From Rhodosorus marinus CCMP1338 (taxonomy: Eukaryota; Plantae; Rhodophyta), in the NCBI GenBank assembly GCA_029953675.1, contig JAMWBK010000011.1:620001-684000 (forward strand): a DNA stretch of 64,000 nucleotides, written 5' to 3'. Positions within the stretch are counted from its first letter, which is position 1. Every line of letters starts with the position of its first letter. The position numbers and the translations under genes are program-made. The notes beneath the pieces are model-generated. The model saw only the letters and a program-made list of their open reading frames with translations, made no database searches and was not told where the DNA came from. Below are positions 19,156 to 49,808 of the stretch, piece by piece.

Positions 19156-21718
19156 CTCTCAACAACCACAGGAGCAAACAAACCCCTCCACTCCAAGCCC
19201 TCCTTCCCAGCACTCCCCCCAAAATTCCGTCTGCACCACAAACGCAACCGCCGGATCAACTCCTTTCACAACCTTCCTGCGCAAAGCGAAACAAGACCGC
19301 CAATCTAACTCCCTCACAAAAGGACGACACCTAAAACACTGCGCCCTCTTCGGCGTCACGACGTCCTCAAAACCACAAGAGCTCAGCAGTCGTCTCCCTC
19401 CGCTTCCCAGCAAGAGAGAACAAAAAGAAAACACAAACCCAAAATCCCCACGTCTCCTAACACTCGCATCTTCCAAGCCTGCAGCGGTTACTTCCGCTCC
19501 AGCTCCGTTGCACTCACCCTTCGAACACCTCTTTCCTCGCTGCTGTCACCAATCCTATAAACTCATTCGTCGACTTCCTCCCTCACGAAAACAGGAACAA
19601 CGGGCGTCAGCCGTTCCCCCGTGCCGCTCTTCCCTCTCCAAAAGGGACCCTTTCTACGAACTCCCACTGGCACGTGGAGCGGAGCGGGTGGGGTGGGGTG
19701 GGGAGGGGAGATTGGGGTTGCTTCTCCTCTCTCTACTCAGTCACTCAACCTTCCTTTTCAAAAATCAAAAGACTTAAATACAACTCAGCTCCTTTAGCCA
19801 CCATTTGCCTCTGCCGAAAGCTTAGCCTCACTGAATAGCAGATGACACCCCCAATATAGAGAGATATCTGAAATGATAAAAATCCTCCTGAAATTAAAGT
19901 ATGTCACATTTAGTCCGATAAAAGTACTTAGTACACAGATTAGTACATCAATAATTGAATAAAAGAATAAAATTCCTCACCCTCAAATGAAAATCTTTGG
20001 AAAAAAGGGTCTGGATAAGCAACTCGAAATCAGACATGTTTTGTTAAATAATTGTGTCGCGGTCACTTCGCATTGGCTGGTGGGTCCGGGGTGTTGCCCC
20101 CTCGTAAAGAATAGCGTGGACTTCAACAGTTTTGATGGTACCGTTAACTCCTGAGGGGGCCTGAGTCGTTCAGAGTCTGATGCCCCCAAAAGCGTGCCCA
20201 CCTACATGCTCCTAAATCCTGTTGCTCTTTAGCTAACCTCTTTGAGAAGTGGTCCCCCTCTGAAGAAGAAGCACCTCTGCGGCTATTATCATACGTGTAC
20301 AAGTACGTATTCCTGTATGGTTAACAAAAATAAGACGTGCTACCAGCTCTGGTGAGCTGGCTGTTTGGAGGCTTCGACAAATGGATGCACTTGCCATGGG
20401 GTTTTGAGACTGTAAGACGTCTCGTCTCGGTTGCGTTGAAAATCCGCAACCGAAAGCTGATGAAGCTTCAGGTGGCATCGTCATCCAGCGCTTGCCTATG
20501 ACTGTTCAGTAGTTGAAACGCTGCCCTCCTTCTGGAGGACGAGGTCTTTTCGTCTTCGTTAGTTTCTCGGCTGGTATACCCTCGGCTGCTAGTCTCCGAG
20601 TAAAGTCAGTGGGATTGACTTACGCTTCTAGGTCCATCTTCTTAATGACTTTCAGTTCAATAATTCATCCTTTCATGTGGGGCATTGAACGTTTTGTTCA
20701 TTATATGAGTGAGCTTTGATGTACTGTATTTTAGTTGCTAAAACATAAGGCTTGGTGAAATCCTTTTCATGAATATACAAAATATATTTAAGCAAAGGGC
20801 ATGCCTCAATGCGATGATGCCCCGCACATTGCCCCGATATCGAGGGAGACCATTGGAGTTATCATTACCATCACATGTGACCTTCATGCGGCATGCCTCA
20901 TGCCCCCACTTTACTCGTTCCATCTGATGTGTTGTCTTTGTTTATTCTTCATTATTATACGTTTTATTCAGCAGACGCGTCTGATACTGTTTAGCGGACA
21001 GTTTACGACAACCGCATTAAAGACAAGAACAACGAAGGACAGGCTGTCGTTTTGGGCTGTGGGTAGGTAGGTTGGTCTGGTCTGTTAGAGGCGACTTTGC
21101 ATAGAACAGCTTTGGTCACGCTCTTTACTTCGAAAACAAAGACACAGCTCTGCCCGAGCAGGTTTATGTTTTGTATTTCTGGCCCACGAGGACGAGACAA
21201 GTGCGGGAGTTCTCGAGCCTCCGGGGGCAGAACAGTGGATGCTGGAGAGGCGATTTTTACGATCGATCGTATCGTCTAAGTAGCACGCACTTCATCGAGA
21301 TTATATACTACTAGAGATTCGAGCCACAGGGACGCAAGGCCACAGGCCGGAGATGGGTGGACAAAATCGCCCGACGAGAGCTGTTACAGTATACATCCAA
21401 TGCAGATACTCGTGAGAGGATTTCGGCGACAGGCGTGGCAATCGACACTTGTCTCTGGATGTAATAATCCAACAAAGATCCATCTAAAAACGTCGGCAAC
21501 GCCCGTCACCGAATCCTCCCAGGCGCAACTGACCATTTGTCACCACCGGACTGTCCTCTTCCTCGTGGATTTTGTCCGCATGGTTGAGGATGCTAAAGTC
21601 CGCAAGGTCATGGTGGATCTAGAAACAGACGATGTGACTAGATGATGACAATAATTTACAAAGAATACATGTGCGAGTCTGTGTCGCGTATTCCAGAAGC
21701 TCCTGGGCCTCACAGAGT

Positions 21719-22459
21719 TTACGTCGGTACCGTGTTCACTTCCGCCGTCCGAGAATGTGTGCTATCGTTCGTGCCTGCGTCGATGGTCTCCGTCTGGGTC
21801 TCACTCGAGTTCCTGGCCAGCGTACTCAGGGCGGGTATATCCTCTTCGGTCTCCGGTTGGGCCCTCGCGCTCGTGTTTAGTGGCGCGTCCTGCTCGTCTT
21901 TGGTAAAAATTACAAATGGGGTTTTGCAAATGGGGCACTGCGCGTCGCCTCGCGTGTAGACCCACTTCGAGAGGCAATGCACGTGATACGCATGTTTGCA
22001 AGGCGGGGCAATAAAAATAGTTTCCGCCGAGTCCTTCGCTATGACAAAATCCTCAAGGCATATACTGCACACGTCATCTTGAATCTCCTTCAAATCGAAG
22101 TCCTTGTCGCCCAAGTCAACCAGTCCCTGTGCAGAAATTGCAGAGAACAGGGAAAACCAATCCGTCAGCCGAGTTTGACTCAGCATTCACGAACAAACAT
22201 CAAACCAGAGACAAAGCCAAAATCTTACCTTCTCAACAACTTCCTGTGTAACTTCGACCGCTCCAGGCCCAGACCCATCCACCTGAACACTGCCCAATTC
22301 CACCAAGAACGCATCCCGCGTCCCATCCGTGAAAAATTCAAATTCGTCTCGCTGGCGGCGGTGCCTCACCCACCTCCAGTACAGATAATGAGCAGTCAAG
22401 CACAGGAACACCAGCGCAAACGCCACCGGCGCGAACAAATAAAACCTAATGCTATTCAT
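21719..22459 (-). CDS. TM + RING-H2 (ATL-like) paralog 8, ~212 aa
   Basis: Exon 1 22459-22229; intron 22228-22127 (GTAAG...CTGAC...CACAG, 102 nt); exon 2 22126-21719 with CSIC-x19-CKHAYHVHC-LSKW-x8-CPIC and an S/T/E-rich tail. Confidence 0.92.
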
Positions 22460-22631
22460 CTTGACTCAATCCAACCCAAGTCAACCCCAACTCTTACCCC
22501 AACCGCACAAGCTCTTACCGCCGCCCAAAAATCCGCAACGCGACCTCCCTCTCCATCCTCACCAAGGAAAAGGTAACACCAACAAGAAGAGACTGGAGAG
22601 CTCAAGCCCAGCCTCTGAACCTGATCCCCGG

Positions 22632-22892
22632 ACTCTCTCTCTGCCTCTCCCACTCTCCGTCTCGCTCTGTCTTTCTCCCTCTCTCTGTCTCTCTGTCTCA
22701 CTGTCTCTATATCTCTCTCTGCCTCTCCCACTCTCTGTCTCGCTCTGTCTTTCTCTCTGTCTCTGTCTCTGTCTCTCTGTCTCTCTGTCTCTCTGTCTCT
22801 CTATCTCTCTCTGCCTCTCCCGCTCTCTGTCTCGCTCTGTCTTTCTCTCTCTCTCATTCTCTGTCTCTCCCTCTCTCTCTCTCTCTCGCTCT
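22632..22892. repeat. Compound (CT)n/(CTGT)n microsatellite with higher-order units
   Basis: CT-rich tract containing three copies of a CTGCCTCTCCC...GTCTCGCTCTGTCTTTCTC unit at about 22641, 22719 and 22811. Confidence 0.9.
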
Positions 22893-23480: not shown

Positions 23481-23703
23481 CTAGACGCGCCTTATTCGTG
23501 GAAAGGAAGGCCGTCTTTCGCCATGGGGGAAACGCAGCTTTAAGAACGATTATCACAGAGCTCTGTCCAAGTAGGTTTCTGGAGCAGACTTAATCCCCGA
23601 AGGTCAGCAAACGGACAATGTGACTAGATGATGCCAATAATTTATAACAATATATGTGCGAGTCGTGTCGCGTATTCCAGGAAGCTCCAGGGTCTCACAG
23701 AGT

Positions 23704-24452
23704 TTACGTCGGTCCTATGTTCACTTCCACGGTCCCAGAATGTGTGGTATCGTTCATGACGGCGTCGATGGTTTCCGTGTGTGTCTCACTCGAGTTCCTG
23801 GCCAGCGTACTCACGGTGGGTATATCCTCTTCGGTCTCCGGTTGGGTCCTCGCAATCGTGTGGAGTGGTGTGTCCGGTTCGTCTTTGGTAAAACTTACAA
23901 ATGGGGTTTTGCAAATGGGGCACTGCGCGTCGCCTCGCGTGTAGACCCACTTCGAGAGGCAATGCACGTGATACGCGTGTTTGCAAGGTGGGGCAATAAA
24001 AATTGTTTCCGATGAATCCTTCGCTATGACAAAATCCTCAAGGCATATACTGCACACGTCATCTTTAATCTCCTTCAAATCGAACTCTTTGTCGCTCATG
24101 TCAACCAGCCCCTGTGTAGAAAATTGCCAGAGAACATGCAAAGAATTTTTGCATTCGTCAGGCTAGTTTAACTCAGCATACAGGAACAAACATCAAACCA
24201 GAGACAAAGCCAAAATCTTACCTTCTCAACAACTTCCTGTGTAACTTCGACCGCTCCAGACCCAGACCCATCCGCTTGAATACCACCCAACTCCATCAGG
24301 AACGCATCCCGCATCCTACCCGGGGAAAATTCAAATTCCTCTCGTCGGTTGCGGTGCCTCAGCCACTTCCAGTACAGATAACGAGCACCGAAGCACAGAA
24401 ACCCTAGCGCGAACGCCATCGGCACGAATACATAAAACCTCACATAAGCCAT
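23704..24452 (-). CDS. TM + RING-H2 (ATL-like) paralog 9, ~212 aa (recent duplicate of paralog 8)
   Basis: Exon 1 24452-24222; intron 24221-24112 (110 nt); exon 2 24111-23704. Exon lengths are identical to paralog 8 and the RING is near-identical. Confidence 0.92.
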
Positions 24453-26013
24453 ATTGACACATTCGAACACCAGTCAACCCCAAATCCACGCGCTCCTACC
24501 GCCTCTGGAAAACCACACAACTTCCCTCTCCATCCTCACAAACGCCGACCAGAAGAAGAAACTGGAAAGCCAAAGCCCAGCCTCCTGAACCGAGCAAACT
24601 CTCTCTCTCTCTCTCTCTGTCTTCAGAAACAAAGAGCCAGCAACTGAATCGGCTTCCGCCTTCGCTGTAGTGGGAAAGTGTCCGGTTTGATTGAAAGGGG
24701 AAGAACCGACTTTCCTGAAGCCTCCGATCGCCTTCAACGTGTGACCCTCGGGCTAAGTACTATCAGCAAAGTTTTAGCTGACCCGCGTGGTCAGACTCGC
24801 CGCTGGAGCAGAGCTCCCAACGGCAGAGACAGTTCACGTTCCTGACTCTTTCGACAAAAGAAACAATGTATAAATCCGGAAGGGTTCTGTCTTCGTTTCA
24901 ATCTCCCAGGCGCTCCCCGATCAGCTTCTTGCAAAGCATTTCTGTGGGAAACTGTCTATCTGACCACCCTGGGTAGCAACGCTAATGCTCTTGGGTTTCC
25001 TAGGACGAACGTAGCCATACCGTGGATGCTCCTTTCTCATCTCAGAAAGCGAGGAAAACCGGTGGCGCGTTCTCTATCACAAGATTTGCTATCGGAATCA
25101 ACGATTTAGCACAGCCAGAGAATTGGACAGAGGATTCCTATAAGGTTTACTGGAATCCTATCCGGAATCGGCTATTTAGTTTTGGGACACCGGATGAAGA
25201 CTATGTAGACGACTCTGGAGCGGATGGCTGGCACCCAAGCTGTCATCAATGTGACCTCCAGTCAGTGTCTGGAACGGACAGTTGGATTATTGTGATAATT
25301 ATTCGATCTTTTTCCGGTCTAGAGTTGAGGGCCTCGTGGTCAGGATTTGGAGAGCACCTAAGCGATGCTCTCCATCTGAAAAGCGACTGTAGTTTTAGCT
25401 GCAGATGTTGAGCGTTGATGTTGGATGAACGCGGCTTGGGGATGAATCGGAAACAGGCCTGCCTTCCACCCATTGCTGAGAGGGCTTTTCATCCGAAAGT
25501 TTCCAAGCTTTTCGGGCTTGAAGCGTTATAGTCCATAGTTTGCTGGTCATGAGTATCTCATGTCTGTTTTTGAGAGCTTATGTGCTGACCAGCCTCACAA
25601 TCTCAACTGAGTTTTCGAAATAACACATCGTAAAGGGAAAAGACAGCCTGTTCTTACAATGTCAGGCATTTTAATAATAAGCATACAATCGGGCCCTTGA
25701 TATACAATAATTCTGCGTTCTCAAATCATGAAAATCGCCGGAATGCACAAGCCTCGAAGCCTTTGGACGAGCTACGACAACGAAGAGCGTCCTTCGACTC
25801 AGCCTTCCGCCTTGTGTATGAAAAGAGAGAACGATTGGCCACCATCGTTCGAAAAGAGGGGAAGAAGTTCTCCAACAAAGCGCACTATCCAACGTGTACT
25901 TTGCCCTTGAACGTCAAGCTTCAGAATCCACTGCCCTGTACCTGATCTGCAGTCAGTGTAGTTCGCTTGGGCCATTCTGTACGTCTCGAAGGATTCCTTC
26001 GGTTTCTCCTCTG

Positions 26014-29302: not shown

Positions 29303-29539
29303 ATGCAGAAGTGGAGTGTAATTGCGGTGTGTGTTTTATCTTTGATGATCTTGTTGATGTTGAAGCCAATGCGGGATCAGTATCTTGAGCTTGTCGAACT
29401 GGAGGAGGAGTATGAAAGGGTCCAGCTCACGACTCAGGCTTACAGAATGTCCGTGCAGCAGTTTAATGATGATATACCGTTTGAGATTAGAGAACTTGAG
29501 CAGATGAAGCAGAGATTGCAAGTTGACTCGCAATCGTGA
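29303..29539 (+). CDS. Small signal-anchor + coiled-coil protein (stalk family member 1), 78 aa
   Basis: MQKWSVIAVCVLSLMILLMLK hydrophobic segment, then E/Q-rich heptad-like sequence. A downstream exon cannot be excluded. Confidence 0.5.
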   Translation: MQKWSVIAVCVLSLMILLMLKPMRDQYLELVELEEEYERVQLTTQAYRMSVQQFNDDIPFEIRELEQMKQRLQVDSQS

Positions 29540-30920
29540 GGTAGTTTGTGACCTCGTTGATGAGAACAACTGAATTTGAAGATCTCGTTGCTGCGTGCGT
29601 GAAGCTAGGGTGAACTGGAATCCTCAAAGAGTGTACATTTAAGCGTTGGAGCGGAAAGTTCACCCGAGATTCAATAAAGTTGTCTTCAAGTCGAATCTAA
29701 TAGTTCGAGCAAGACGTTCCGGTTCCCTCCACATTCAATTCCCTAGCTAACACTGGTTGGTAGATGAGTCATTCACCGGGCTTAAGCGGATTACAAATTC
29801 AGTGTTGCTCCGATCTATGCTCCTTTTGGGGTGTCCCTTCGAACCTAGGAGAGGCGAGAAACGCTTGTGAAATGAAATTCGAAAGATCTTGAACCCACCA
29901 TGAAGATTGCAACAAGTTGCCAGTCGCGGTAAAGCCCCCGTGTTGCATTACGGGGCATCTACTTGACTTGGTCAGCATTGCCTGTTCGCGTGTGTCCCTC
30001 TTACGTGTAAAATATTTACATGAGCGAGCTGGTGTATCCGCAGATCTACTAGAAAAAAAAGGGGCCGCAAAGGACCTTAGCTAGAGGCCTCAACCGACGA
30101 GAAACAAATGTCGTTGGCCGTCGGTGGTTCACCTGAGGTCGCCAGCAGCACCAGACCACTCCGTTTTCTATTCGAGTATCCTGAATTGCTGTGTACAGTA
30201 TTTGGGCACAAGCGCGAGCCTGATGACGATGACGAGGATCGGGTACCTAACCAACAAAACTCGTAAGTTGACGAGGACGAGCGATCTGAGGAATCAGGCG
30301 AGGACAAGGCAACCACTCTAGCTTAACAAACACTAAAAGCCTATTAACGATAGACTAGAATTTTAAAAATGAAGACTAAACCCGCCCAGTTAGCACACTT
30401 AGTCTAGCAGACACGTACGTCGCGCTGCTCAAACGTTTTCGAGAGCTTTAGGTGGACGTGCGGATTCGTTTAGGAAGGTCGCGAAGAGCGCCGGGGGGTC
30501 CAATTGTTGCTGTGAGGTAGATCGATGTTGGAAAAATTCCTTTGGAGCCTTCATCGATTGTTTTGGTTGGTGTTCCTAGTCTGACGTGTTGTGCTACGGT
30601 ACATCTTCTGGGCTCGCCTTACCCACCATTAGAGGAAGCCGCGTTTGGATTGAGGGAGCGGAGGATCTTCGGGTTTGAGAAAGTTTGCTTGTTGTTGTGT
30701 ACAGTGATAAAGTGCTCGCTTCGAATTTTCTTCCGAATTCCTTTGTCTTGACTTCTGAAGTTCGTCGTGTGCTGTTCATCTGTGGATTGGGGATTGGAGA
30801 TCGATTGTTGGATCCGGGTCCGAGCTGAAACGGAATAGTTCGGCTTTAAGTTGCGAAGCTAGCGTTGCCCGTGGTTTAATTTTCTTTTGTGTGTAAGTGG
30901 GGGGGCGCCCGAGGTACAAA

Positions 30921-31349
30921 ATGGCTGTTCCGTTGAAGAAGAAAGGGCAACCTAGGGAGAGGCTCATCGTGGTTGCTCTTGCATGCGTCTTGTTGTTGAT
31001 GTTTATCAAGTACCAGCTGAACTCCTCCCGAGCACGCTTCATTGTGAGTGACTTGCAGTTGTTGAAGATGGAGTCTGTAGGACATGAAGAGTCGATCAGT
31101 AAGCTTCGGGTTCAGTGGTGGAATGCCCATAAAGAACTGGAAAAGCTGCAAAAGGAGGAGAGGACTGGGAGGAAGGCAAGTAGAAAACCGCCAAACCTTG
31201 TCGTTCCAAAACCCCAAGAAAATCAGAAAGCGGCCCAAGCACAAGCAAAAGCTGAAGCCGATGCTGCAGCTCAACCGGAGGGAGCCGCAGACAAGCCCGC
31301 GGAGGTGGCCAATGACCTGGGAGCCGGTGATGCGCTTCCGAACGCATAA
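30921..31349 (+). CDS. Type-II membrane coiled-coil protein (stalk family member 2), 142 aa
   Basis: MAVPLKKK basic tail, TM LIVVALACVLLLMFI, coiled coil containing VGHEESISKLRVQ, A/E/P-rich tail; clear paralog of 31899-32348. Confidence 0.8.
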   Translation: MAVPLKKKGQPRERLIVVALACVLLLMFIKYQLNSSRARFIVSDLQLLKMESVGHEESISKLRVQWWNAHKELEKLQKEERTGRKASRKPPNLVVPKPQENQKAAQAQAKAEADAAAQPEGAADKPAEVANDLGAGDALPNA

Positions 31350-31898
31350 GTCGTTCTATCCCTGGCCAGCTTACCTTTTTACAAACACCGCTTGCGCCTT
31401 TTGAATCGATTGAAACGAGAGTAAATGTTTATAAACGCAATAACGTTACATACTGTGCAAACAAAACCCAATAGCTTTTCACGTCTTCGAAGATGACAGC
31501 TGTCCCCCGCCTCGGGCCAATTTTCGGGTTTTCGTTCCATCCAATGTTACAAAGGGGAACAGTCACTCTTCTAAAGTGGCGGTTCGAAAAGGAAAATCTG
31601 TTGCTGTTGCTCGGGCCGAGGGCGATAGATTGCTTGCTATGACTCCTGGCCGCACTGGTTAACGTTCGGGCAGGAGAGGTGCCATTGGAAAGCGGAAGAC
31701 CTCATGTTCGAGGATTTATGTATCTGTGCACAGGCGTATCCTTTTGAAAGTTTCTAGGATCTCGTTTGTTTGGGGAGGAGTGAGGGCCTGGACTGTTGTT
31801 TTTTGTTGTTGTTTTTTTCTCTTCGCGAGCTATTTGGTTGATCAGTGTTGATATTGAAAGGCGTCAAGGGGAAGGCAGGGGTTTAGGTTGGAGAAAAT

Positions 31899-32348
31899 AT
31901 GGCTGTGCCTTTAAAGAAGCGCACGCTCATACAGGAGCAACTAATGGTGGCAGTCTTGGTGGGTACTTTGTTGATGATGGTGGCGAGTTACTGGGTGAAA
32001 GCCAGCAGGATACACTTTGTTGGGCAAGAAATGGAGAGGTTTAAGGTGGAGAACGTTGGCCATGAGGAGTCGATCAGTAATCTTCGGGTTCAATATCAAA
32101 GAAATCATTGGGAGCTGGATAAATTGAAAAAGCACCTGAAGAGTAGGCCTGGGATGGCTCTGGATACAAGCGGGAAGACGAGAGACGAGCATGCCCCACT
32201 TGCTGCGGAAGGGGCTGCTGAAACCGGAGCAAAAGCAAAAGCGAACGCTGCCGACCCGCCTGTGAGGGTTGATCAGGTTGTCAACGACGCCTCAAAGGAT
32301 TTCGTTGATGAGACTATTGTGAGAGAAGCAGTCGATGCCAACGTCTAA
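31899..32348 (+). CDS. Type-II membrane coiled-coil protein (stalk family member 3), 149 aa
   Basis: MAVPLKKR tail, TM LMVAVLVGTLLMMVASYW, VGHEESISNLRVQ coiled coil. Confidence 0.8.
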   Translation: MAVPLKKRTLIQEQLMVAVLVGTLLMMVASYWVKASRIHFVGQEMERFKVENVGHEESISNLRVQYQRNHWELDKLKKHLKSRPGMALDTSGKTRDEHAPLAAEGAAETGAKAKANAADPPVRVDQVVNDASKDFVDETIVREAVDANV

Positions 32349-33630
32349 GACACACATATTAAGTAATACGAATGTTGGTTCCCTGCCTGATTGTATTGGA
32401 CTACCCTCATCGAATCTCCGTGCAAGAAGGCCTGCTGAAACTGTAAGTGGAAAACCATAAGACTACCAGCCGAGATTCTATAGAGAGAGTTCGGCGGCCG
32501 AGAAACCCTCAGCACATGTTGAAACGTCGCGCTCTCCCGCCCTGGAGGAGGAGAATGAGCTAGTCACGAGCCAATCTCCCGTTGTATTATCTTATCGACA
32601 ATGAGACCCCAATGGAAATACTACTGAACGGAATATATATAACGCCAATAAAGAGTTTTCCATTCGATTCGACCTTTGCAACGGCACTTCGAAAATAGTA
32701 CACACGACCATCTGCGCACTATAGGACCGTACCTAATTTTGCCTAGGAAGCACACAATTCCTGTACTGCGTCTGATATTGTCAGAGATGCATTGGTCCCG
32801 GCATTCGCTTGACGAGAGGCGGACAACCCTAGTCCTAGTTCAAACTTTTGGCGGAAAGTTTGAAAAGTTTCTCACCACCCCAAACCATAAAATGAAACTT
32901 TTTAACAGGATCATCAGTTTTGATAAAATAAGGACACGTGCAATGTTTTTATTGTCATTTTGTCAACAAGTGGCAATAAATCTCCAATTTTAAACATTTA
33001 TTCATCCACAATATATTGTATATCATGATATTAATAAAATGATACTATATCGTTTAGCTAAATAATAAAACATATACATATATATATCCACTTTTTGAAA
33101 TATATTTGTACTACATAAAATATTTTTGAATTATTTCCAAAAGCATATATATATTGATTGAAAATACGACACGTTAAAACACTAAAAGAGTGTTTTGTCG
33201 ATCGTTGACTAATGGCTCCAAAATATAAACTAAAAGCATTTACATAGTCTTGTATTAAGATTAATAATAAGAATATGTACAGTCCGCTCTCTAGGCGGAA
33301 AACAATTGGATTTAGGATGAATTGTATTTTTTGAAAATATTTTATTTAGATCGTTAAGGACACGCTGTCCTAATGTTTCGGAGGTGTTTCGTTCAGTAGT
33401 TTAGCACTACTTACGATGCTCAATGTATCGGCGTTGGGAGTGGACAGGGTTTGGAAGTGGAGGGGAGGATCGATTTGGGGAGGTACGGCATTTCTTTGGT
33501 AGGCTTGAGGTTGTTATTTGGCGCTTTTATGTGTTGACTGTTGGGCTACTGGTCTCGGACAGCTTTTGCCGAAGTTGTGTGTGGCGGTGTTGACGTTGTT
33601 GAGGTGGTTTTTTGCCTTTCCTTTGCAAAT

Positions 33631-34173
33631 ATGAATGCGCATAGGAAGAATGGAAGAGTGATGCGGGATATTCTGTTGGTGGGAACATTGGGCACGGTGT
33701 TCGTGGTTATGTGCTCGCTGTTCCTGATGAGAAGTTCACGTGTGAGCTATTTGCAAGTGACGATTCCAACAGCGGAGGTGGAGCGCGCGGCGGTCCAGAA
33801 GCAAATTTTGGATCTTCAAAGGGACATGAAAAAGGTTCAGTATGAGAAAACGTGGCTCGTGAGGAAGGAAAAACAGCTAGAAGAGAAAATAAAAGTTTCC
33901 GCAGCCCAAGCAAAGGCTAGGGAGGAGAAGAAGAGAATGGAAGCAGAAATTTTAGAGGAAGCGAAAAAGCTTGAGCACGACCACACGTTCGAAAAGGGAA
34001 AGGAAGAAAATGAAGACTACGCATACGATGAGTACGAAGAAGATGAGGAGGATGAGGAGGATGAGGAGGATGAGGAGGATGAGGAGGATGAGGAGGATGA
34101 GGATGATGATTACGATGAAGACGATTATGATGAAGACGATTATGATGAAGACGAAGAGGCAACGGATTACTGA
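33631..34173 (+). CDS. Type-II membrane coiled-coil protein with D/E-rich tail (stalk family member 4), 180 aa
   Basis: MNAHRKNGR tail, TM ILLVGTLGTVFVVMCSLFLM, long K/E coiled coil, then (DEE)6 and (YDEDD/E)3 repeats. Confidence 0.8.
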   Translation: MNAHRKNGRVMRDILLVGTLGTVFVVMCSLFLMRSSRVSYLQVTIPTAEVERAAVQKQILDLQRDMKKVQYEKTWLVRKEKQLEEKIKVSAAQAKAREEKKRMEAEILEEAKKLEHDHTFEKGKEENEDYAYDEYEEDEEDEEDEEDEEDEEDEEDEDDDYDEDDYDEDDYDEDEEATDY

Positions 34174-34480
34174 CTTTCAAGGGAAGAGAGAACACGAAGT
34201 GCGGTGGTTTGATTAACTTGCAACTTGAGGCTTCCAATACTTTGTCCGGGAAAGTTTCTGGGGAGGGAATCCTGCCCGAGAATAGTATCCGCAAAATTTC
34301 GTGGGTTTCTTCTTCCTTAATGATCTGAAAAGTACACTCTTTCCAGTCTTCCGATTTTTGATCATCGGCTGGTGTTCGGTCATTCCTAGTAAAATTGCTA
34401 GGAATCCGAGTCTGGGGCCTACCTGTGGCCAATTAGCAACATGGGATTCATCCACAAGGATGCGGGACCAGCAACAGGGT

Positions 34481-34808
34481 TGACCTTGGTGGTTGCAATA
34501 TTGTTGTTGGACACTGATCGACTCTTAACTGGTGCTTCTAATAGTGATATAGCTCCCTACAACGGTTGTCGATATACGTTCTGCCCCGGCCCCTCCCCCA
34601 GGGTTTGTATTGACCGTTTGAATAGAGCTGGCCGCAGGTTGTACAAAAGCCAACGCACGTCACTCGATGAGTTTGTAGGCGGTCGCCCTGGCTGTGGCGA
34701 TATATCAATGATGGGGCGGGAGGGACTGTTTAACCTTCGCCGTCTTTAAAATTTTTTTTTTGCCTTTTGGTCGGATCGTGCATCTTCTCTGCGTTTGGAG
34801 AGGTTCCA
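34481..34808 (+). repeat. ~325-bp direct repeat, copy 1
   Basis: Near-identical to 37317-37646: 2-3 substitutions and a 2-nt C-run difference, counted by eye. Confidence 0.95.
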
Positions 34809-35792
34809 CGAAGTCTTCACTCGAGGGCCTTGATACATTGTTGTGAGAACGAGTCGAACCACTACGACCTGCTATCCACTTCCTGAACTCTTGTAGAAAG
34901 GGGAGAGCTCAGAGGTACCAACACGACTAAGGGCAGAACCCTCCAGAGCTTCCTAAATATAATATGTACTGATCAACTACTGGCGTCGCGCTCCACGCTC
35001 CAAAACCTATGTGTTGTTAAAGAGCAGAACGAATTTAAGAGCAGCCAATGCAAGGTTCTGCTTACCCCTGCGGGCTTCCCCTTCTTCTCGTTAACTTGCT
35101 CCGCACCAGTGGTATGGAGATCAGCTCAGAACGACCCGTCCCGTAAAAGCCAGTTTGGCGTTCCAGACAAAACCAATCCGGGCAGAGCGTGACGCGAATC
35201 TTCAGCGTCAGGGCTCCGGAAGCAAGCCTAGGCCTGTTCCTTTCCAGGTCGTGGAAATGAAACAAGGGGTGATCACAAAGTGTCCTGAAACAGGAGATAA
35301 AAGACTGATCGAGCTTGAACATCGGCTGAAGACCGCGACAGACGAAATCGTAGCAACCCCAGCGGGTCTAATGCAAGTATGGAATTTTTGGTCTACTGAT
35401 GAAAACCTTTGAAAGCGAGGTTATTTGTATTTAATTTTAGAATAAAATAGATACAAAATTATGTTCTTTTATCTTAAGTTTTTAGATTGCTCCACAGCTT
35501 GAGTTCAAACGGCGGGTTTTAATGGGATGCTATCGTGGCTCCGACCGACCAAAGTCCAGGCAGAGAGGAGGGAATCTTCGCGAGGCGTTTCCGACCAAGG
35601 CCGTGAGCGATCTAGGCAACCCGATATAACACTGCCTAGTATAATACAACATCGGATTTCGCCGTGTCTGGAGGAGACTGAGGGTAGCATCTGTGACCTC
35701 GTCGTAGTAGGGAGCAGGATGGTTGTGCTGGGATAGTTCAGCTTGGTAGGGAAGTCCTCGTTGAAGCTTTCGAGGGCTTGGACCACAACAAT

Positions 35793-36155
35793 ATGGGTCT
35801 TCCTATGAAGAAAAGGTTGCTTCTCAGAGATATGGCTCTGGTGGGAACTTTGATGACGCTCCTGGTGTTCATGATTTCTCAGTTTTGGCTTCGAGGGCGG
35901 CGGATGGATGTCCTGGAGTCGGAAACAACGAAAATGGCCGAGGAGAGGAGAGAGCTGCTTGCGAAAATTGGGGAGCTGGGCCAAGCATTTGAAGACTTTC
36001 GAGAAGAAAAGGAATCCCTGAAAAGTAAGATTAGGGACGAGCACAAACGTCGAGCCGCAAAGGAGAATCCCAAAGAGAACCGGGGAACAACCGTGGTGGA
36101 TTTGGCACGAGCGCAAGCACAACGCCATCTGCAGCCTATTGATATTAACCTCTGA
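35793..36155 (+). CDS. Type-II membrane coiled-coil protein (stalk family member 5), 120 aa
   Basis: MGLPMKKR tail, TM MALVGTLMTLLVFMISQFWL (LVGTL shared with members 3 and 4), E/K-rich coiled coil. Confidence 0.8.
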   Translation: MGLPMKKRLLLRDMALVGTLMTLLVFMISQFWLRGRRMDVLESETTKMAEERRELLAKIGELGQAFEDFREEKESLKSKIRDEHKRRAAKENPKENRGTTVVDLARAQAQRHLQPIDINL

Positions 36156-37316
36156 AAACGCGGGACCCTCAACAGCTACGTCGTGAATTGAAACGAAATT
36201 CACTGTGGGCGTAGGTGGCTCATGGGTCCAATTGCACTCTGGTATTCCTTCGCGTTATCTATTGTTGTTGTTTTGCTTGTTGCTCCAAATACACAGAGTG
36301 ACAACGCAAATGAGGACGGGGGGACCCATCAGCGCACCACAACCCTTCGAGCAAGTGTGATACAGATGTGCCAAGGAAGAATATTAGAAGGACACGAACC
36401 AGTGGGTTAGGAGAGCCACGAACTTCCTTTGGATGATGTCCTGTAGTCCCAAAGCTACCCCTCAGATGGAACTTGTTTCACGACGTCGATGGAGCACATA
36501 ATTGTTGGTTAACAGAGGCAAGAAGCAGTATTCGCAATAGCGGGAAAGGTATTTGCCACAATGTTCCGGTACGTTCTCTCACATCATGTCGCCGAATCTA
36601 ACAATCCACCGCTCAATTTTTTTGGTTTAAGCAACGCCTGTGCTTTCGTCATAAAAGAATTAGCTTCGTAGGCGGCAGAACAGATCTTCACTGAGGACGA
36701 TCCGAACCGATAGCCAGACCCAGTCCATCCGTCATGCCGAACACCTCCAAATCGCAACGCCACGAGAGTAGTACAAATTATTCCGTACTAATATGTACTA
36801 TGTTGTAGTTCCAATTGTGTACAGAACCAAATCGTATTTACGTACAACAGCACAAAATTTTACCAAAACGAGGAGTGAAATTCCAAGTAAATACAGACAT
36901 AGGACGCCGGCACACTAGATCCCCCTTAATTTTTCAGGAAAACATGTAAACGTTCGGTGCATACCCGGTGTATTCAATATCGTTTATTTTATATCAACAA
37001 AATGTTAAAACTATTCAAATCACGATTTAGGCGCGATCGGATTGGAGAACACATACCAACGGTCGACACGAGAACAGAAAGTCGCAGGTGCATTGCTGAT
37101 CGGTGGGTGTGCGAAAAGAAAGAATGGGCACCCACGGAGTGTACCAGGATCGCTTCTCTATAGAAAAGTTGTCCAAGAACTACCAAAGGTTCCGCTGAAA
37201 GTGAAAGGTCCCAACTGTGCATCGATTGGCAAGAGAAATCGCTGTCCCGTTCCCATCTGTGTCGGACGTTAGGCGATCATCGGGACGGTTAGGTAGTGGC
37301 ACTCACTGTCATGCAG

Positions 37317-37646
37317 TGACCTTGGTGGTTGCAATATTGTCGTTGGACACTGATCGACTCTTAACTGGTGCTTCTAATAGTGATATAGCTCCCTACAACG
37401 GTTGTCGATATACGTTCTGCCCCGGCCCCTCCCCCCCAGGGTTTGTATTGACCGTTTGAATAGAGCTGGCCGCAGGTTGTACAAAAGCCAACGCACGTCA
37501 CTCGATGAGTTTGTAGGCGGTCGCCCTGGCTGTGGCGATATATCAATGATGGGGCGGGAGGGACTGTTTAACCTTCGCCGTCTTTAAAATTTTTTTTTTG
37601 CCTTTTGGTCGGATCGTGCATCTTCTCTGTGTTTGGAGAGGTTACA
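37317..37646 (+). repeat. ~327-bp direct repeat, copy 2 (upstream of the GT25-like gene)
   Basis: Near-identical to 34481-34808; ends about 50 nt before the ATG at 37698. Confidence 0.95.
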
Positions 37647-37697
37647 CGCATCGTTTTTTTTCTTGTTCTAGAGGGAGCGTGAGCTCGGAGGGTCCGG

Positions 37698-38941
37698 ATG
37701 ATTCAGGTACAGAGCCCTTTCAAGCCGGCATCGGTGCTTATCAGTTTCAACGGCGCGGTGCAGAAGAGGAAGTATTTCAAGTCGAGGGTGAATGCGGATC
37801 TGGTTATGTGCGGGAGTCTCGCTGCGATATTCTTTCTCATGGTTGGAGAGCTGCTGCGATTACGTGGGGACACGATGCGATTGTCGCGAGAGCTCAAGGA
37901 AATGGGAATGGTGGAGTCTATAGTTGGCCAGTCTCTGTCCGAGCTTCAGACGCGATCTAGGAATATAAAAACTGAGCTCTCGGGCTATGACAGGGAACTG
38001 AAGTTTCGGAAATTTGGGCAGGGCAAAAAGCGGAACAAGAAGAGAGCAGAGGATCCTTCGTACAACTCAGTGTTCGACAAAGTCTACTTTGTGACGTTTG
38101 ACGAGTGTACCCAGCAAGAGCAGCGGGCGTTAGACTTGTCATCGGACGTTGGCCTGGACGTCGATCCATTCCGGGCTTTTCGAGCCGAGGACGTCAAGCT
38201 TGGAGAGCCTAATCTTGGGATGGGAATCGACTTGCAAGCTGACAGCATTAGCAAACAAGAGGTAGCATGAATGCTCCGCCTTCGGAGACTAGTATCCTAG
38301 CGGTCACCCTGTTTTCTCACCTTCTCGTTTGCCCGTTCCCCCATCAGGTCGCTGCGCATCTGACTCACAGACAAATCTGGCACGAAATAGTCGAAGACAA
38401 CTATAGGAACGCTCTGATAATTTCTGCTGATTTGATAGTGAAGGAATCCATCCTAAAAATCCTATCGGAGCTAATGGGAGATGTAGAAGATGAGGCTTCG
38501 AGACGAGAAGAGGACTGGCATATGGTTACGTTCCGTAGGAGGAAGCTGGATCGGAGCGCTGACGAAGAGGTAATCCTTAATTCCGTTTTGAATCAGATCC
38601 ATTGGTTATCCGTATGGACTCCCCGCGCTGACGTTGAAACGACTTTCGTGACGAAGGTATTTGCTGGAGGCCCTGATGGCCGTTTTATCACGAAGGCCAG
38701 CCCAAGCCTCGGCTGCAGTTTCTATGCATTGAGCAACAAGGGAGCCGAGCTCTTGTTGCGTCTGGTTGACTCCTACAGGCAACCTCTGGATATGCAACTG
38801 GCGATGCTCCAACAGTCTGGAAAGCTTAACGTTCTTAGCGCGTGCGACAACGATCGCTCTGTTCCCGACTGTCCGGAGAATGCCCTTTTTCAGCGGATGC
38901 AGTCTCAATTCGGCGAGGACTGCCGAGGTCAGCGAAGTTAA
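37698..38941 (+). CDS. Glycosyltransferase family 25-like type-II membrane protein, ~385 aa
   Basis: Exon 1 37698-38261; intron 38262-38347 (GTAGC...ATCAG, 86 nt, phase 0); exon 2 38348-38941. Basic tail/TM/coiled stem, then KVYFV, EVAAHLTHRQIWHEIV...NALIISAD, FYALSNKGAELLL and QPLD, matching GT25 blocks (GCxxSHxxxW, ALILEDD, YxxSxxGAxxLL, PxD). Confidence 0.75.
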
Positions 38942-40066
38942 CCGCACCCTTAGCTCAAATGCGAAAGGACAGACTGTTCTGACTCTGCCTTTCTCTTTCC
39001 GGCATTCTCTTGGTTCTCTTTGAAAAGCTAGGTTTTGACCCACGCGATGAGTTCAGTCGGAAAGAATATTTGAGCTTGTACAGAAACCCCGTCAGCTAGA
39101 CCCCTGGCCGAAGCACGGAGAAAGCCCATGCACCCTTGTACAGGAACTTATTAAAACTCGATTGAAACTGTATGGGCTTCTACCGTAGGCTTACGTGCGT
39201 GCACGACAAGCTTCATCCATCGAGTTCTGGAAATGCAGCACTCGTGCCAGGAGTTCGTCCCATTCCTATTGCCGATCAGTTCATGAAGGGAGCCAGAAGT
39301 AGGACTGACTAATTTCGCACTGAAGAATTGGACGATTTCTTACACCCGTCATTCACCGAATGACGCAAAAGTGAACGCATCGAGTTCTATTCCCACACTC
39401 TTCTTGGTTTACTGGCCATTACAGAAACGGCACCTAGATACGTGTCCTTTGTATCTGGTTAGAGATTCAAAGACCTTACTACCGTACCCTTGCAGAGGTT
39501 TCTTAAACCCTGCACTCGATCCACGATCGCGATTACCAACTTCCTCAATGCTCTTCCCAATATGCTTTCTTCGAACTTTAGTGGGTATGCCCCCAGGCAA
39601 TGCGGTTGGCATCAGAAGCCATGTGTGCTGACACGTCTTTATAAACTCCAGCGGGCCAATTGAGCAGACCCGCGAGATCACGACGAAGGATGGAACAAGC
39701 TTGCTCGAAGGCTAAGAGCTCTGGTCTTCGAAAAGACCCGTTGTTTCCATCCCCCAAGCGACTTTCCACGACAGAGAGAGCAGAGCCATCCGCGGGGAAG
39801 GCGGAGTCCCCAGGAATCTCGGGAAGCTCAACAGTGAGCAGTCCTATGATAGCGTCTGCTGTGACTGGAGCAAGATGCCTCTGAGCGAAGAGGTTGTTTC
39901 TTTAACTCGCTGGTGGTTTTTGGCTTGGATAACAGCTAGGATTATCGCAAGGCTTGAGAGCGAAGAGGACCTGCAGTTTCGTGGTTTCGCTTGGAGTGCT
40001 TAGGGTACAGTGGTAGATACTGACGTCTTCTGTACGATGAAGACTGCGCTTGGGTGATCCCAGGAG

Positions 40067-41072
40067 ATGGTCTGTGAGGAGCTGGTAGTTTGGATCTGGA
40101 GCGGAGAATGGTTTCGACCGTTGAGCGCGAAGGGGACTTTTGTCCTGTCGTTTGGAGCTGTGTTTCTATGCATGATCGTTTCCTCGATTCTCGTCTTTCA
40201 ACACTCAGCGGGAGCGATCATCTGCTTCGTGGTTCTGTCGCTTTTGACCCTAAGTTCCATGGTTCGGTGCGCGGTTATTGATCCAGGCTATGTGACCGAG
40301 TCCTCTACCGGTGCAAGCGATGTTCCGCCGGATCGACTGTGCTTGCGGTGCGAGGGGTACAAACCTCCACGTGCTCACCATTGTAGAGTGTGCAAGCGAT
40401 GTGTGCAAGTTATGGACCATCATTGTACTTTTCTAGCTAACTGCATCGGACGGGGCAACAGGAAACTGTTCCTACTGAGCCTGTATTATGGCTTTTTGTT
40501 GTCCGTTTTGGTCGTTCTCACGGCTCCAAAGGCGCTAAGAACGTACGATCAATGCGACCATTCAAATTGCGAGATTTCGGTTCTATTCGAAAGGTTCTGA
40601 TGCTTCTAAGCGTTCTGTTTCTATTGCCAGTATGGTGTCCGCAACTACCCACTCTGAGACTCCGCCGGAAGCCCTGTACGTGCTCTACCTGATTATCTGC
40701 TTTGTGGTCTTCCAGCAGAGCGCTATATACTCCGTGGCGACCTTCTCTCTCGCAGCATTTCAAACCTTTCTGGTGAAGCGGGACGAGACCACCATTGAGT
40801 TCAGAAGACTGCACGGTAAGGCGCGGAAGCTTTTGCGCAAAGCGGATGCTCTTTTTATGGAGCGAACGCTTGAGCCACCTTTGGCTGAATCCTTCATGCG
40901 AACGTATACAACAGAGGAGAATGAGAACCAACCGCCGCTAGACCCGAACGAAGCCCTTTTGAACCCGCATGGATTCAAGGAAGTCTTCGGCAGCTGTGTC
41001 GCGCTCTGGTTCCTTCCGATCTTCCCTGACGAGTTGCGGACGGAAACATCATACGACGAGCTTCCGGCTTGA
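40067..41072 (+). CDS. DHHC-type palmitoyltransferase (zDHHC/PAT), ~322 aa
   Basis: DPG; CxxC...KPPRAHHCxxCxxCVxxMDHHC...NCIG; TTIE motif; four hydrophobic segments. The two ORFs join in frame through a putative 37-nt phase-2 intron 40594-40630 (GT...CCAG). Confidence 0.9.
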
Positions 41073-49340: not shown

Positions 49341-49607
49341 TACTATAAGGCTGTCTGTTCAAACTAAAGCGAATATTCTAACATACACACTCACAATGTC
49401 CCTTAAAGAGCGGTGCTCTCGGAGAGAGCGCCGTTTCCACTAATGGCTCGAAGATTTGGTTCAGCGCAGAGACGTTTCGGGCCTTGACGAGACTACAAGA
49501 GGACTACACTTCAATGGTGTTGCACCTCTGCATGTCCCTTCACGGATATGAAAAATTTCAAATCGGTATTGAAAGCTTGCGATCAACCAGTATGGAGCGC
49601 TTGTCGA

Positions 49608-49808
49608 GGTCCGCTACGTTCGTTAGATCGCGACTGTATAGTTCTCATTACCACAGTGGGTCCACTACGTTTGTTAGATCGGAGTTTGTAGTTCTCATTA
49701 CCACAGTAGGTCCACTACGTTCGTTACATCGGAACATATAGTTCTCATTGCCACTATAGGTCAACTACGTTCGTTAGATCGGAGTCTATAGTTCTCATTA
49801 CCACTGTG
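49608..49808. repeat. Minisatellite, 4 x ~50 bp
   Basis: Units at 49608, 49659, 49709 and 49759; consensus GGTCCACTACGTTCGTTAGATCGGAGTNTATAGTTCTCATTACCACAGT(A/G). Confidence 0.92.

Follow-up and report, generated by a model that had tools for sequence, protein, structure and literature searches.

A tandem array of four small paralogous genes (O2-O5) lies next to a glycosyltransferase gene, with which it shares the strand, in the nuclear DNA of Rhodosorus marinus CCMP1338 and may encode a family of stalk-only type II membrane proteins that is restricted to Rhodosorus and evolves by birth and death. The explanation that is tentatively favoured here is that these proteins most likely share common ancestry with the tail-transmembrane-stem region (CTS) of the neighbouring GT25-family protein, G6, and would form oligomers in the ER/Golgi. 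The window, i.e., the whole stretch of DNA analysed, comprises 64,000 nt (JAMWBK010000011.1:620001-684000), and the annotation used for comparison is that of NCBI GCA_029953675.1. The features discussed are listed in Table 1.

Table 1. Features of the small-gene array and of the adjacent GT25 gene (positions in the window).
Feature	Position	Strand	Description
O1	29303..29539	+	78 aa; open reading frame and annotated gene
O2	30921..31349	+	142 aa; tail MAVPLKKK, TM 15-33; helical stem with VGHEESIS
O3	31899..32348	+	149 aa; tail MAVPLKKR, TM with LVGTL, VGHEESIS stem
O4	33631..34173	+	180 aa; tail MNAHRKNGR, TM with LVGTL, ~90-residue helix
Recent duplicate	34481..34810	+	98.5% identical to G6 5' flank/5'UTR; in the O4-O5 spacer, ~980 nt upstream of O5
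O5	35793..36155	+	120 aa; tail MGLPMKKR, TM with LVGTL, strongly heptad-patterned stem
Native 332-nt segment	37317..37648	+	ends 50 nt before the G6 start codon; putative promoter and 5'UTR
G6	37698..39099	+	type II GT25-family glycosyltransferase gene, 374 aa, three introns
G6 exons	37698-38261, 38348-38569, 38657-38927, 39032-39099	+	confirmed by the spliced mRNA L008 and proteins P0010 and P0023
G6 tail-TM-stem	37698..38069	+	exon 1; tail 1-33, TM 34-53, stem 54-124

All five plus-strand, intronless open reading frames of 78-180 aa that the initial annotation had described were found; each is a single-exon gene in the NCBI annotation, and none has a Pfam domain. O5 is annotated from an internal methionine at 35832 (107 aa), but the start at 35793 is favoured because the family alignment covers the upstream methionine, from which O5 scores 107 bits against the family HMM (HMM positions 1-82). 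Paralogy among O2-O5 was detected by tblastn within the window (O2 with O3, E 1e-19; O3 with O5, 1.5e-6; O4 with O5, 5e-5), and on these comparisons their tandem arrangement can be regarded as no chance pattern. The presence of LVGTL in three of the proteins was likewise confirmed (O3, O4 and O5). In an exhaustive profile search covering 1.84 billion representative proteins, the sole matches were Rhodosorus family proteins (96-147 aa) and three long repetitive proteins, and a catalytic domain was absent from every relative of the family in that search. Transcribed orthologues of O2 (P0021 from MMETSP0011, on contig L003, and P0012 from MMETSP0315) and orthologues of O4 (P0014 and P0015 from MMETSP transcripts, P0020 from Logan) were recognized; neither an orthologue nor a transcript of O5 was detected, the same profile search included.

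The fifth gene does not belong to this family. O1 scores 2.2 bits against the O-family HMM, a value equalled by 1120 of 5000 shuffles, and it lacks the short basic tail that had been ascribed to all five proteins and is present in O2-O5. It is composed of a hydrophobic anchor (residues 5-23) and an acidic heptad-patterned helix (a/d pattern p=0.001 vs shuffles). Its orthologues P0002 and P0003 are ~94% identical to it, with dN/dS of 0.11-0.13, and no relatives were found in Pfam or PDB. Judged by sequence, the proposed five-member array consists of four paralogues plus one unrelated small transmembrane/coiled-coil gene, and O1 is a separate, strongly conserved protein that merely neighbours the array.

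The small genes might have been first exons of longer spliced genes, a possibility raised in the initial annotation, and this was ruled out. The contigs of JGI 3300017118 are taken to be MMETSP0011 mRNA because all three introns are spliced out of L008, which represents the glycosyltransferase orthologue. Contig L003 of the same set, 2.4 kb long with an A-run at its end, is colinear with window positions 30483-32897 across O2 and O3. The stops of orthologous reading frames lie at equivalent positions, and transcripts of O1, O2, O4 and the GT25 gene, as well as of an O3 pseudogene, are present in related strains (MMETSP mRNA contigs). Window tblastn and the six-frame GT25 HMM search matched only the exons of G6, with no GT25 relics downstream of the small genes, which agrees with the earlier statement that they lack a catalytic domain. 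Hidden catalytic exons behind them were excluded by tblastn and the GT25 HMM.

The GT25 domain of the next gene was confirmed, but the gene is spliced and extends to 39099, past the end originally assigned to it (38941); the latter is the end of an isoform of 356 aa in which the last intron is retained. GT25 proteins include the procollagen galactosyltransferase COLGALT1 and bacterial LPS galactosyltransferases. G6 scores 36.2 bits against PF01755, above the Pfam gathering score (cut-off 24), matches COLGALT1 chains in the PDB (E 4e-4) and aligns across the COLGALT1 nucleotide-binding core. The match is strongly divergent and confined to profile positions 60-197, and the FEDDL of COLGALT1 is replaced by ISADL in CCMP1338 and by ISDDL in the MMETSP0011 orthologue.

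The likeness between the O family and the G6 CTS is weak but reciprocal. The O-family HMM scores 16.8 bits against G6, with HMM positions 8-81 aligned to residues 29-102 (74 residues, one gap), a score reached by none of 5000 segment shuffles and by 6 of 5000 heptad-preserving shuffles, although such nulls may underrate the score attainable by two unrelated proteins that each have a TM plus a coiled coil. For the G6 orthologue P0010 the score is 11.6 bits (5/5000 and 98/5000, respectively). G6 is the top non-family match among 1700 six-frame window segments (E 1.3e-3); in the reciprocal search with a GT-stem HMM, O4, O5 and O2 are the top three non-self matches. Smith-Waterman scores against G6 are 53 for O5 and 48 for O4, with shuffles at ~30, so that the paralogues nearest to G6 are also the most similar to it. 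The homology to glycosyltransferase stems proposed in the initial annotation thus stands as a reciprocal resemblance of the whole tail-TM-stem but is weak: the hhalign alignment was confined to the TM (probability 26%), the TM contributes about half of the 16.8 bits, and the stem-only likeness has p ~0.03-0.9. The motifs VGHEESISxL and IVGQSLSEL, by which the two had been linked, are present (VGHEESIS in O2 and O3, IVGQSLSEL in G6), but their match is not significant alone (stem-only Smith-Waterman, 83-90 of 1000 shuffles).

These weaknesses leave room for another possible, somewhat less probable interpretation, in which O2-O5 are an unrelated orphan family with an architecture like that of GOLM1/GPP130, the CTS resemblance is convergence and the adjacency is coincidental. 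Apart from the TM-only hhalign result and the heptad-preserving nulls, it is consistent with the global search, in which the likeness was far too weak for the O-family profile to retrieve G6. In GOLM1 (GOLPH2/GP73), a cytoplasmic tail of ~12 residues needs a basic residue, the TM confers Golgi localisation, and a luminal coiled coil dimerises directly after the TM and is followed by an unstructured region (PMC3226628). This order of elements, with a tail and TM followed by a luminal coiled coil and then by an unstructured or acidic region, is seen in GOLM1 and GOLIM4 (GPP130) and is shared especially by O4, which is predicted by AlphaFold2 as a single helix (residues 4-126; 10-residue block mean pLDDT 83-96 over 11-110) with a disordered tail that is Asp/Glu-rich over ~55 residues (net charge -40 after the TM). 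In sequence, the O proteins and GOLM1/GOLIM4 are not homologous (no Pfam match, no non-Rhodosorus relatives), and the former are shorter by a factor of 3-5, have none of the disulfide cysteines and occur in one algal genus. Convergence is argued against by the best rank in both directions among natural segments that include other TM proteins, by the colinear alignment from tail base to stem, and by the greater similarity of the paralogues closest to the glycosyltransferase gene.

Each of O2-O5 comprises only a short basic tail, a signal-anchor TM of ~17-20 residues, a long heptad-patterned helical stalk and a variable low-complexity tail, which is the layout of a Golgi type II glycosyltransferase CTS module without the enzyme. 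Under the favoured explanation of common ancestry, such genes could have originated by partial tandem duplication of the GT25 5' exon, or the enzyme could have captured such a module. We infer that the proteins would be inserted N-in/C-out in early secretory (ER/Golgi) membranes and would act there as TM/coiled-coil oligomers. The C-terminal parts differ among the paralogues: that of O2 is rich in Ala/Gln/Lys/Pro, and O3 has the conserved motifs DEHAPLAA, AKANAADPPVR and FVDETIVR.AVD. The last of these motifs and the acidic tract of O4 would be needless for a pure decoy and count against the favoured explanation.

The same parts, at similar size, are found in the CTS of tobacco GNTI, i.e., a short tail with basic residues, one short TM and a stem prone to form coiled coils. 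A CTS-only fragment of this enzyme (77 aa) is by itself able to reach the Golgi; through the stem it binds to the complete enzyme, whose pathway it blocks (PMC10715278). That fragment is an artificial truncation, whereas O2-O5 are naturally encoded separate genes with C-tails of their own, and they adjoin the glycosyltransferase whose CTS they weakly resemble. Basic tails are reported to promote the export of plant glycosyltransferases from the ER (PMC3014094). By analogy with the GNTI fragment, it may be speculated that O2-O5 associate with the GT25 protein or with further enzymes of the Golgi, whose retention or activity they would then modulate.

In its strongest form, this idea makes the O proteins dominant-negative or adaptor microproteins that, through their TM and stem, would enter hetero-oligomers with the neighbouring GT25 enzyme or with others in the Golgi and so tune retention, complex formation or activity. 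MicroProteins, e.g., LITTLE ZIPPER and Id, are small paralogues with a single domain that titrate larger relatives with several domains, and what O2-O5 have in common with them is the concept of a small protein reduced to the oligomerisation module of its larger paralogue. The microProteins known so far target transcription factors, either in the nucleus or in the cytosol, and a membrane-anchored Golgi microProtein derived from a glycosyltransferase stem was not found in the literature searched. GnT1IP/MGAT4D, a type II Golgi protein that is encoded naturally and has no catalytic activity, is related to a glycosyltransferase family and inhibits the Golgi enzyme MGAT1 (PMC4572887, PMC2935569); it reportedly does so via a retained large GT-like luminal domain, which O2-O5 lack altogether. 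All the evidence for CTS relatedness (HMM, ranking and reciprocal search) bears on the microprotein proposal too, as do the same-strand adjacency, the block of N-glycan processing by over-expressed GNTI CTS through its stem coiled coil, and the copy of the GT 5' flank/5'UTR upstream of O5, which could couple expression. It is nevertheless unlikely: the stems have diverged too far from the GT stem for sequence to predict specific pairing, the C-terminal tails have features of their own, and O3 was lost in a lineage that keeps the glycosyltransferase. The link to cell-wall polysaccharide synthesis that had also been suggested found no support in the analysis.

Slightly more doubtful still is the view that the reading frames are largely non-functional, being transcribed, decaying partial duplicates or read-through frames with no cellular role. 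In its favour, O3 has an overall dN/dS of 0.88, with 1.35 for its stem (vs L002), and in the MMETSP0011 lineage its ATG is lost and a frameshift is present, as both L003 and L007, assembled independently, show. O5 has no orthologue, and the tail of O4 is unstable in length among orthologues, that of P0014 being different and basic. The near-neutral or pseudogene state of O3 and the missing O5 orthologue indicate that the family is dispensable at least in part, which also weighs against the favoured explanation. On the other side, dN/dS is below 1 for O2 (0.41) and O4 (0.53), stop positions are conserved, and over ~140 codons at dS 0.26-0.40 the frames remain open, with no indels in O3 and few, all in-frame, in O2 and O4, unlike the flanking DNA with 28-34 gapped positions per 500 nt. 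High dN/dS is moreover expected for such sequence, because the tail and stem of the genuine glycosyltransferase evolve equally fast (G6: tail 1.07, TM 0.22, stem 1.02, GT25 domain 0.31; O family pooled: 0.75, 0.37 and 0.72 for tail, TM and stem). The O family and G6 have matching rate profiles, in which the TM is constrained and the tail and stem are fast; this counts in favour of common ancestry.

The TM and coiled coil attributed to the five proteins were recovered to different degrees. Every protein carries a single hydrophobic 19-mer (mean Kyte-Doolittle hydropathy 1.9-2.5), whereas heptad a/d occupancy is strong vs shuffles (p<=0.002) in the GT stem and in O1, O3 and O5 (O5 p=0.002) and weaker in O2 and O4 (p~0.1). 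Topology is uncertain because basic residues also follow the TM (RSSR, RGRR); SRP/ER insertion is favoured because in each protein the flank N-terminal to the TM carries more positive charge than the C-terminal one and TM hydropathy is high. A reversed topology, in which the proteins would be signal-anchored in the mitochondrial or plastid outer membrane and expose a cytosolic coiled coil as tethers or division/positioning factors, would accord with basic residues on both sides of the TM, as in many outer-membrane signal anchors, and with a post-TM part free of Cys and usable N-glycosylation sequons, but it is improbable given this flank charge and hydropathy and the likeness to the CTS of an enzyme, GT25, that must have its catalytic domain in the lumen.

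Copying of part of the 5' region of G6 into the array is ongoing, which is in keeping with the favoured explanation. The recent duplicate in the O4-O5 spacer has no Rfam match and is missing at the orthologous site in L006, and its last 59 nt correspond to the 5' end of the glycosyltransferase mRNA L008.

The window corresponds to positions 620001-684000 of contig JAMWBK010000011.1 in the nuclear genome assembly GCA_029953675.1 of Rhodosorus marinus CCMP1338, a unicellular red alga. The assembly comprises 31 Mb with 8392 genes and 24,821 introns, and its BRAKER gene models were trained with RNA-seq (PMC10250338). Five small intronless ORFs on the plus strand, here designated O1 to O5, had been described in the initial annotation, and this observation is real: all five lie where they were claimed, each is a single-exon gene in the NCBI annotation, and the tails and motifs quoted for them are found in the sequence. 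Exact proteins for O1, O2 and O3, as well as for two neighbouring genes, are present in NCBI, and the series is followed in the annotation by a gene for a 356-aa protein with a PF01755 (GT25) domain, referred to here as G6 or the GT. The start of O5 is probably not the annotated internal Met, since the family HMM described below aligns from its first position at the Met upstream.

Features of the locus in window positions, with pairwise dN/dS (Nei-Gojobori; compared with the closest strain available, over 78-180 codons in the small ORFs and 374 in G6)
Feature	Position	Strand	Description	dN/dS
Weak O2 tblastn match	654-857		noise	
RING-H2 array	1-28000	-	tandem finger genes	
RING-H2 gene	2519-3178	-	hydrophobic N-terminal ORF upstream	
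RING-H2 duplication	21623-22649 / 23609-24615		~1 kb, 83% identical	
O1	29303-29539	+	78 aa, single-exon annotation	0.11-0.13
O2	30921-31349	+	142 aa, single-exon annotation	0.41
O3	31899-32348	+	149 aa, single-exon annotation	0.88
O3 lesions, other lineage	31880-32120		L003:1345-1600 and L007:380-640	
O4	33631-34173	+	180 aa, single-exon annotation	0.53
O4 Asp/Glu-rich tail	33990-34173	+		
O5	35793-36155	+	probable start; annotated 107 aa, single exon, from internal Met	
Direct repeat, copy in O4-O5 spacer	34481-34810		~980 nt upstream of O5	
Direct repeat, copy at G6	37317-37648		ends 50 nt 5' of G6 ATG	
G6	37698-39099	+	374 aa; isoform of 356 aa ends at 38941	
G6 ORFs	37698-38270, 38267-38941	+	exons of one gene	
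G6 mRNA blocks	37590-38266, 38346-38572, 38655-38929, 39030-39147	+	contig L008	
G6 introns	38262-38347, 38570-38656, 38928-39031	+	confirmed by L008	
G6 ISADL	38411-38425	+	residues ~210-214	
DHHC palmitoyltransferase gene	40067-41072	+	ORFs 40067-40600 and 40632-41072	
Tandem units	49607-49807		101 nt, 85% identical	
Repeat cluster	60060-62118		direct and inverted	

All known relatives of these genes come from transcriptomes or short contigs of further "R. marinus" strains. The contigs of one JGI assembly represent mRNA, since the O2 orthologue encoded on one of them (P0021, on contig L003) bears an MMETSP0011 identifier and another (L008) is spliced at the GT gene. L003, which is 2433 nt long with an A-run at its end, is colinear with window positions 30483-32897 over O2 and O3 with small gaps only, O1 is covered by contigs L005 and L004, and O4 is covered by L006. 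Orthologues of O2 (P0012, P0021) and O4 (P0014, P0015) are present among MMETSP proteins. Stops in the orthologous ORFs are at equivalent positions; O3 has no indels, and those of O2 and O4 are all in-frame. The coding parts share ~80% identity, whereas the flanking DNA shares ~70-72% and has 28-34 gapped positions in every 500 nt. Since the mRNA contig L003 is colinear with the genome, its assembly is spliced at the GT gene, the stops are conserved and the annotation is single-exon, the reading of O1-O4 as first exons of longer spliced genes, against which the initial annotation had warned, is rejected. Transcript evidence from related strains covers O2, O4 and, as a pseudogene, O3, and the accessible datasets hold neither an orthologue nor a transcript of O5.

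The claimed array of five is in fact a set of four paralogous, single-exon, stalk-only genes, O2-O5, preceded by an unrelated small gene. Paralogy is indicated by tblastn (O2 and O3, E 1e-19; O3 and O5, 1.5e-6; O4 and O5, 5e-5), and a family HMM built from 8 sequences with 82 columns gives 107-122 bits for each of O2, O3, O4 and O5. O1 was considered as a diverged member and rejected: it scores 2.2 bits, a value matched or beaten by 1120 of 5000 shuffles, it has no tblastn match, and it lacks the basic tail. A weak tblastn match of O2 near the start of the window was inspected and is noise, not a family member. O1 itself combines a hydrophobic anchor at the N-terminus with an acidic coiled coil. 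Purifying selection on it is strong (dN/dS ~0.12), two other datasets encode the identical protein, and no relatives of it were detected in Pfam or PDB.

In available data the O family is confined to one genus. A HMMER search of 1.84 billion representative proteins with a profile of 89 conserved N-terminal columns matched only the Rhodosorus orthologue groups of O2-O5 (96-147 aa) and three long repetitive proteins, the latter in coiled-coil stretches only. This exhaustive search returned no homologue outside Rhodosorus, no homologue with any extra domain and, within the R. marinus proteome, no paralogue group beyond those of O2-O5; word-indexed searches added orthologues only, and metagenome DNA scanned with O5 and with O4 gave no match. 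O1-O5 contain no Pfam domain, with sub-threshold coiled-coil noise only, and their PDB matches are generic coiled coils only. Degenerate GT25 exons 3' of the small ORFs were ruled out, as tblastn and a GT25 HMM run on six-frame translations detected no relics of the catalytic domain in the window outside G6. The absence of a catalytic domain, as originally described, is thus upheld by the domain search, the short homologues, the lack of relics and the colinear transcript.

The adjoining gene was correctly recognized as a GT25 gene. The spliced G6 protein matches PF01755 with 36.2 bits against a gathering cut-off of 24 (its orthologue P0010 with 37.7 bits), and PDB chains of procollagen galactosyltransferase 1 (COLGALT1) match it with E 4e-4. 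L008 maps to G6 in four blocks and confirms three introns; the full product has 374 aa, and the shorter isoform retains the last intron, as seen from P0010 versus the protein P0023. A public GT25 model, P0011 (NDN08_007185, 284 aa), uses another second splice that truncates the GT25 domain, and the spliced MMETSP mRNA favours the four-exon structure over it. G6 has a basic tail (residues 1-33), a TM (34-53) and a heptad-patterned stem (54-124). The FEDDL motif of human COLGALT1 corresponds to ISADL in G6 and to ISDDL in P0010 from the MMETSP0011 lineage, so that G6 keeps one Asp of the acidic motif (E/D-D-D) with which the GT-A fold binds metal and nucleotide, and metal or nucleotide binding may be altered or reduced in the CCMP1338 enzyme.

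The O proteins were then proposed to derive from the cytoplasmic tail, TM and stem (CTS) of such a Golgi type II enzyme. BLAST and hhalign revealed little similarity: hhalign aligned the TM alone, with 26% probability, the GT was not among the matches of the profile search in 1.84 billion representatives, and no GT25 paralogues with N-termini were retrieved for comparison. As hhalign reached only the TM, the assessment relies on HMM scores, two shuffle nulls and window-wide controls, and all significances refer to a single a-priori comparison with shuffle or window-sized nulls. Positions 8-81 of the family HMM align colinearly with G6 residues 29-102 with one gap and 16.8 bits, about half from the TM and half from the stem, and P0010 scores 11.6 bits. 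When tail, TM and stem were shuffled separately, the score was reached in 0 of 5000 shuffles for G6 (p<2e-4) and 5 of 5000 for P0010; with heptad phase preserved, in 6 of 5000 (p ~1e-3) and 98 of 5000, respectively. Of 1700 six-frame segments of natural window sequence, other proteins with an N-terminal TM among them, G6 exon 1 ranks first outside the family (E 1.3e-3; runner-up 11.4 bits). In the reciprocal direction, the best three non-self matches of an HMM of two GT CTS sequences are O4 (E 0.017), O5 (0.43) and O2 (0.95). Smith-Waterman scores against G6 are 53 for O5 and 48 for O4, with shuffle means of 27-31, and these two paralogues, the closest to G6 on the DNA, are also the most similar to it pairwise. 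The VGHEESISxL and IVGQSLSEL motifs, paired in the initial annotation, fall inside the alignment, but the pairing has no significance on its own.

Taken together, there is moderate evidence, not proof, that the O family and the G6 CTS share common ancestry. The alternative, that the resemblance arose by convergence without shared ancestry, would agree with an hhalign match restricted to the TM, with the GT missing from the profile search and with the scores reached by heptad-preserving shuffles, but the reciprocal ranking, the colinear alignment and the greater similarity of the paralogues closest to G6 speak against it, and we regard it as unlikely, though a serious possibility. The GT-derived reading is partly supported for origin and architecture, by the HMM score and reciprocal ranking, and any functional role is putative.

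A direct repeat of 332 nt, 98.5% identical between its copies, occurs immediately 5' of G6 and again in the O4-O5 spacer. L008, the GT mRNA of the other strain, includes the last 59 nt of the segment at its 5' end, which identifies the copy at G6 as the native GT25 5' flank and 5'UTR. The spacer copy is an insertion missing from the orthologous site in L006, which is the O4 3'UTR in that strain. The GT 5' flank was thus recently copied into the spacer, which implies that partial duplication of the GT 5' end occurs at this locus. The repeat has no Rfam or tRNA match, and a local copy of the GT 5' flank accounts for it better than a known RNA or tRNA-derived element would. Along these lines, O2-O5 may have originated by partial tandem duplication from sequence shared with the GT CTS.

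The pooled dN/dS of the O family is 0.75 in the tail, 0.37 in the TM, 0.72 in the stem and 0.49 in the C-tail, and the values for G6 are 1.07, 0.22 and 1.02 in tail, TM and stem and 0.31 in the GT25 domain. The O-family rate profile is like that of the glycosyltransferase CTS, and such fast evolution would leave any homology faint by now. At the sequence level, a weak reciprocal similarity to the adjacent GT CTS is accompanied by a matching rate profile. In the MMETSP0011 lineage, two 1-nt deletions remove the ATG of the O3 orthologue and another 1-nt deletion, between TM and stem, shifts the frame. These lesions are found in two independent assemblies (L003 and L007), so O3 is a transcribed pseudogene in this lineage and the O family is subject to gene death. 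The C-terminal motifs of O3 are nevertheless conserved in three lineages. The view that the O genes are decaying, non-functional duplicates gains from the O3 lesions; it is harder to reconcile with the dN/dS below 1 of O2 and O4, the conserved stops and the in-frame nature of the O2 and O4 indels, and is considered improbable. A GAR/GAY repeat expansion makes the Asp/Glu-rich tail of O4 longer by 34 residues than that of the L006 orthologue, and the O4 orthologue of a third strain (P0014) has a basic tail in its place, possibly owing to a frameshift.

O1-O5 each have one strongly hydrophobic segment near the N-terminus (mean KD hydropathy 1.9-2.5) of ~17-20 residues. The net charge is +2 to +4 on the N-flank versus +1 to +2 on the C-flank, as expected of a type II signal anchor. 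The basic cytosolic tail ascribed to all five is present in O2-O5 and missing from O1. A coiled coil is predicted for O1, O3, O5 and the GT stem, where heptad a/d occupancy exceeds that of shuffles (p<=0.002), and is marginal in O2 and O4. AlphaFold2, run with the family alignment, models O4 as a single continuous helix (residues 4-126) followed by a disordered acidic tail, with 10-residue block means of pLDDT of 83-96 over residues 11-110. Spans this short are usual in early secretory membranes. Together, charge bias, high TM hydropathy, span length and basic tails suggest that O2-O5 insert N-in/C-out into ER and Golgi membranes, where they would oligomerise through TM and heptad stalk. Basic tails are described as driving ER export of plant GTs (PMC3014094). 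A reversed topology in an organelle outer membrane, many of whose signal anchors likewise have basic residues on both sides of the TM, runs against the stronger N-flank charge and the high TM hydropathy and is very unlikely.

The way in which tail, TM and stem bring about the retention, sorting and assembly of Golgi enzymes is still an open question. Artificial fragments that consist of the CTS alone can poison their parent enzyme: one of 77 aa from tobacco GNTI binds the complete enzyme through the coiled coil of its stem, and N-glycan processing is blocked (PMC10715278). This engineered fragment is the nearest functional analogue of O2-O5 and makes pairing of O proteins with Golgi enzymes mechanistically credible. 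Speculatively, they could pair with GT25 or other Golgi enzymes and alter retention or activity. The full proposal, a natural array of free-standing copies of the CTS, as targeting and oligomerisation module, beside its parent GT, whose membrane-anchored microproteins compete for or bridge stem and TM contacts, tune the localisation or activity of GT25 and perhaps other Golgi enzymes, and undergo rapid birth and death, is put forward as an improbable idea. The nearest natural analogue, GnT1IP/MGAT4D, is described as inhibiting MGAT1 through a GT-like luminal domain (PMC4572887, PMC2935569), which O2-O5 lack. GOLM1/GPP130 (PMC3226628) and O4 are alike in layout, with a tail, a TM, a luminal coiled coil and an unstructured or acidic region, but homology to GOLM1/GOLIM4 is absent (no Pfam match at E<=0.1, no non-Rhodosorus relative in 1.84e9 representatives). 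A limited literature search brought up no Golgi glycosyltransferase with a stem-only paralogue encoded in nature, which is no proof of novelty. If the proposal is true, the array would be the evolutionary counterpart of the artificial CTS fragments, would bring Golgi membrane enzymes within the microprotein concept and would supply compact natural tools for probing or engineering algal glycosylation. Should the connection with the enzyme be purely historical, the locus would still be a clean case of partial tandem duplication giving rise to short, fast-evolving, taxonomically restricted membrane-protein genes, of modest interest.

Several other features were recorded in the window. Directly downstream of G6 on the same strand lies a DHHC palmitoyltransferase gene in two ORFs, presumably with a short intron between them; O2, O4 and G6 have Cys in their TM segments, and this proximity may be coincidental. 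Upstream of the small ORFs, RING-H2 finger genes form a tandem array on the minus strand. A hydrophobic N-terminal ORF lies upstream of at least one of them, and the array includes a ~1 kb duplication. GC skew is negative in this minus-strand block and positive from ~28 kb, where the plus-strand array starts. Self-BLAST revealed tandem units and a cluster of direct and inverted repeats further downstream.
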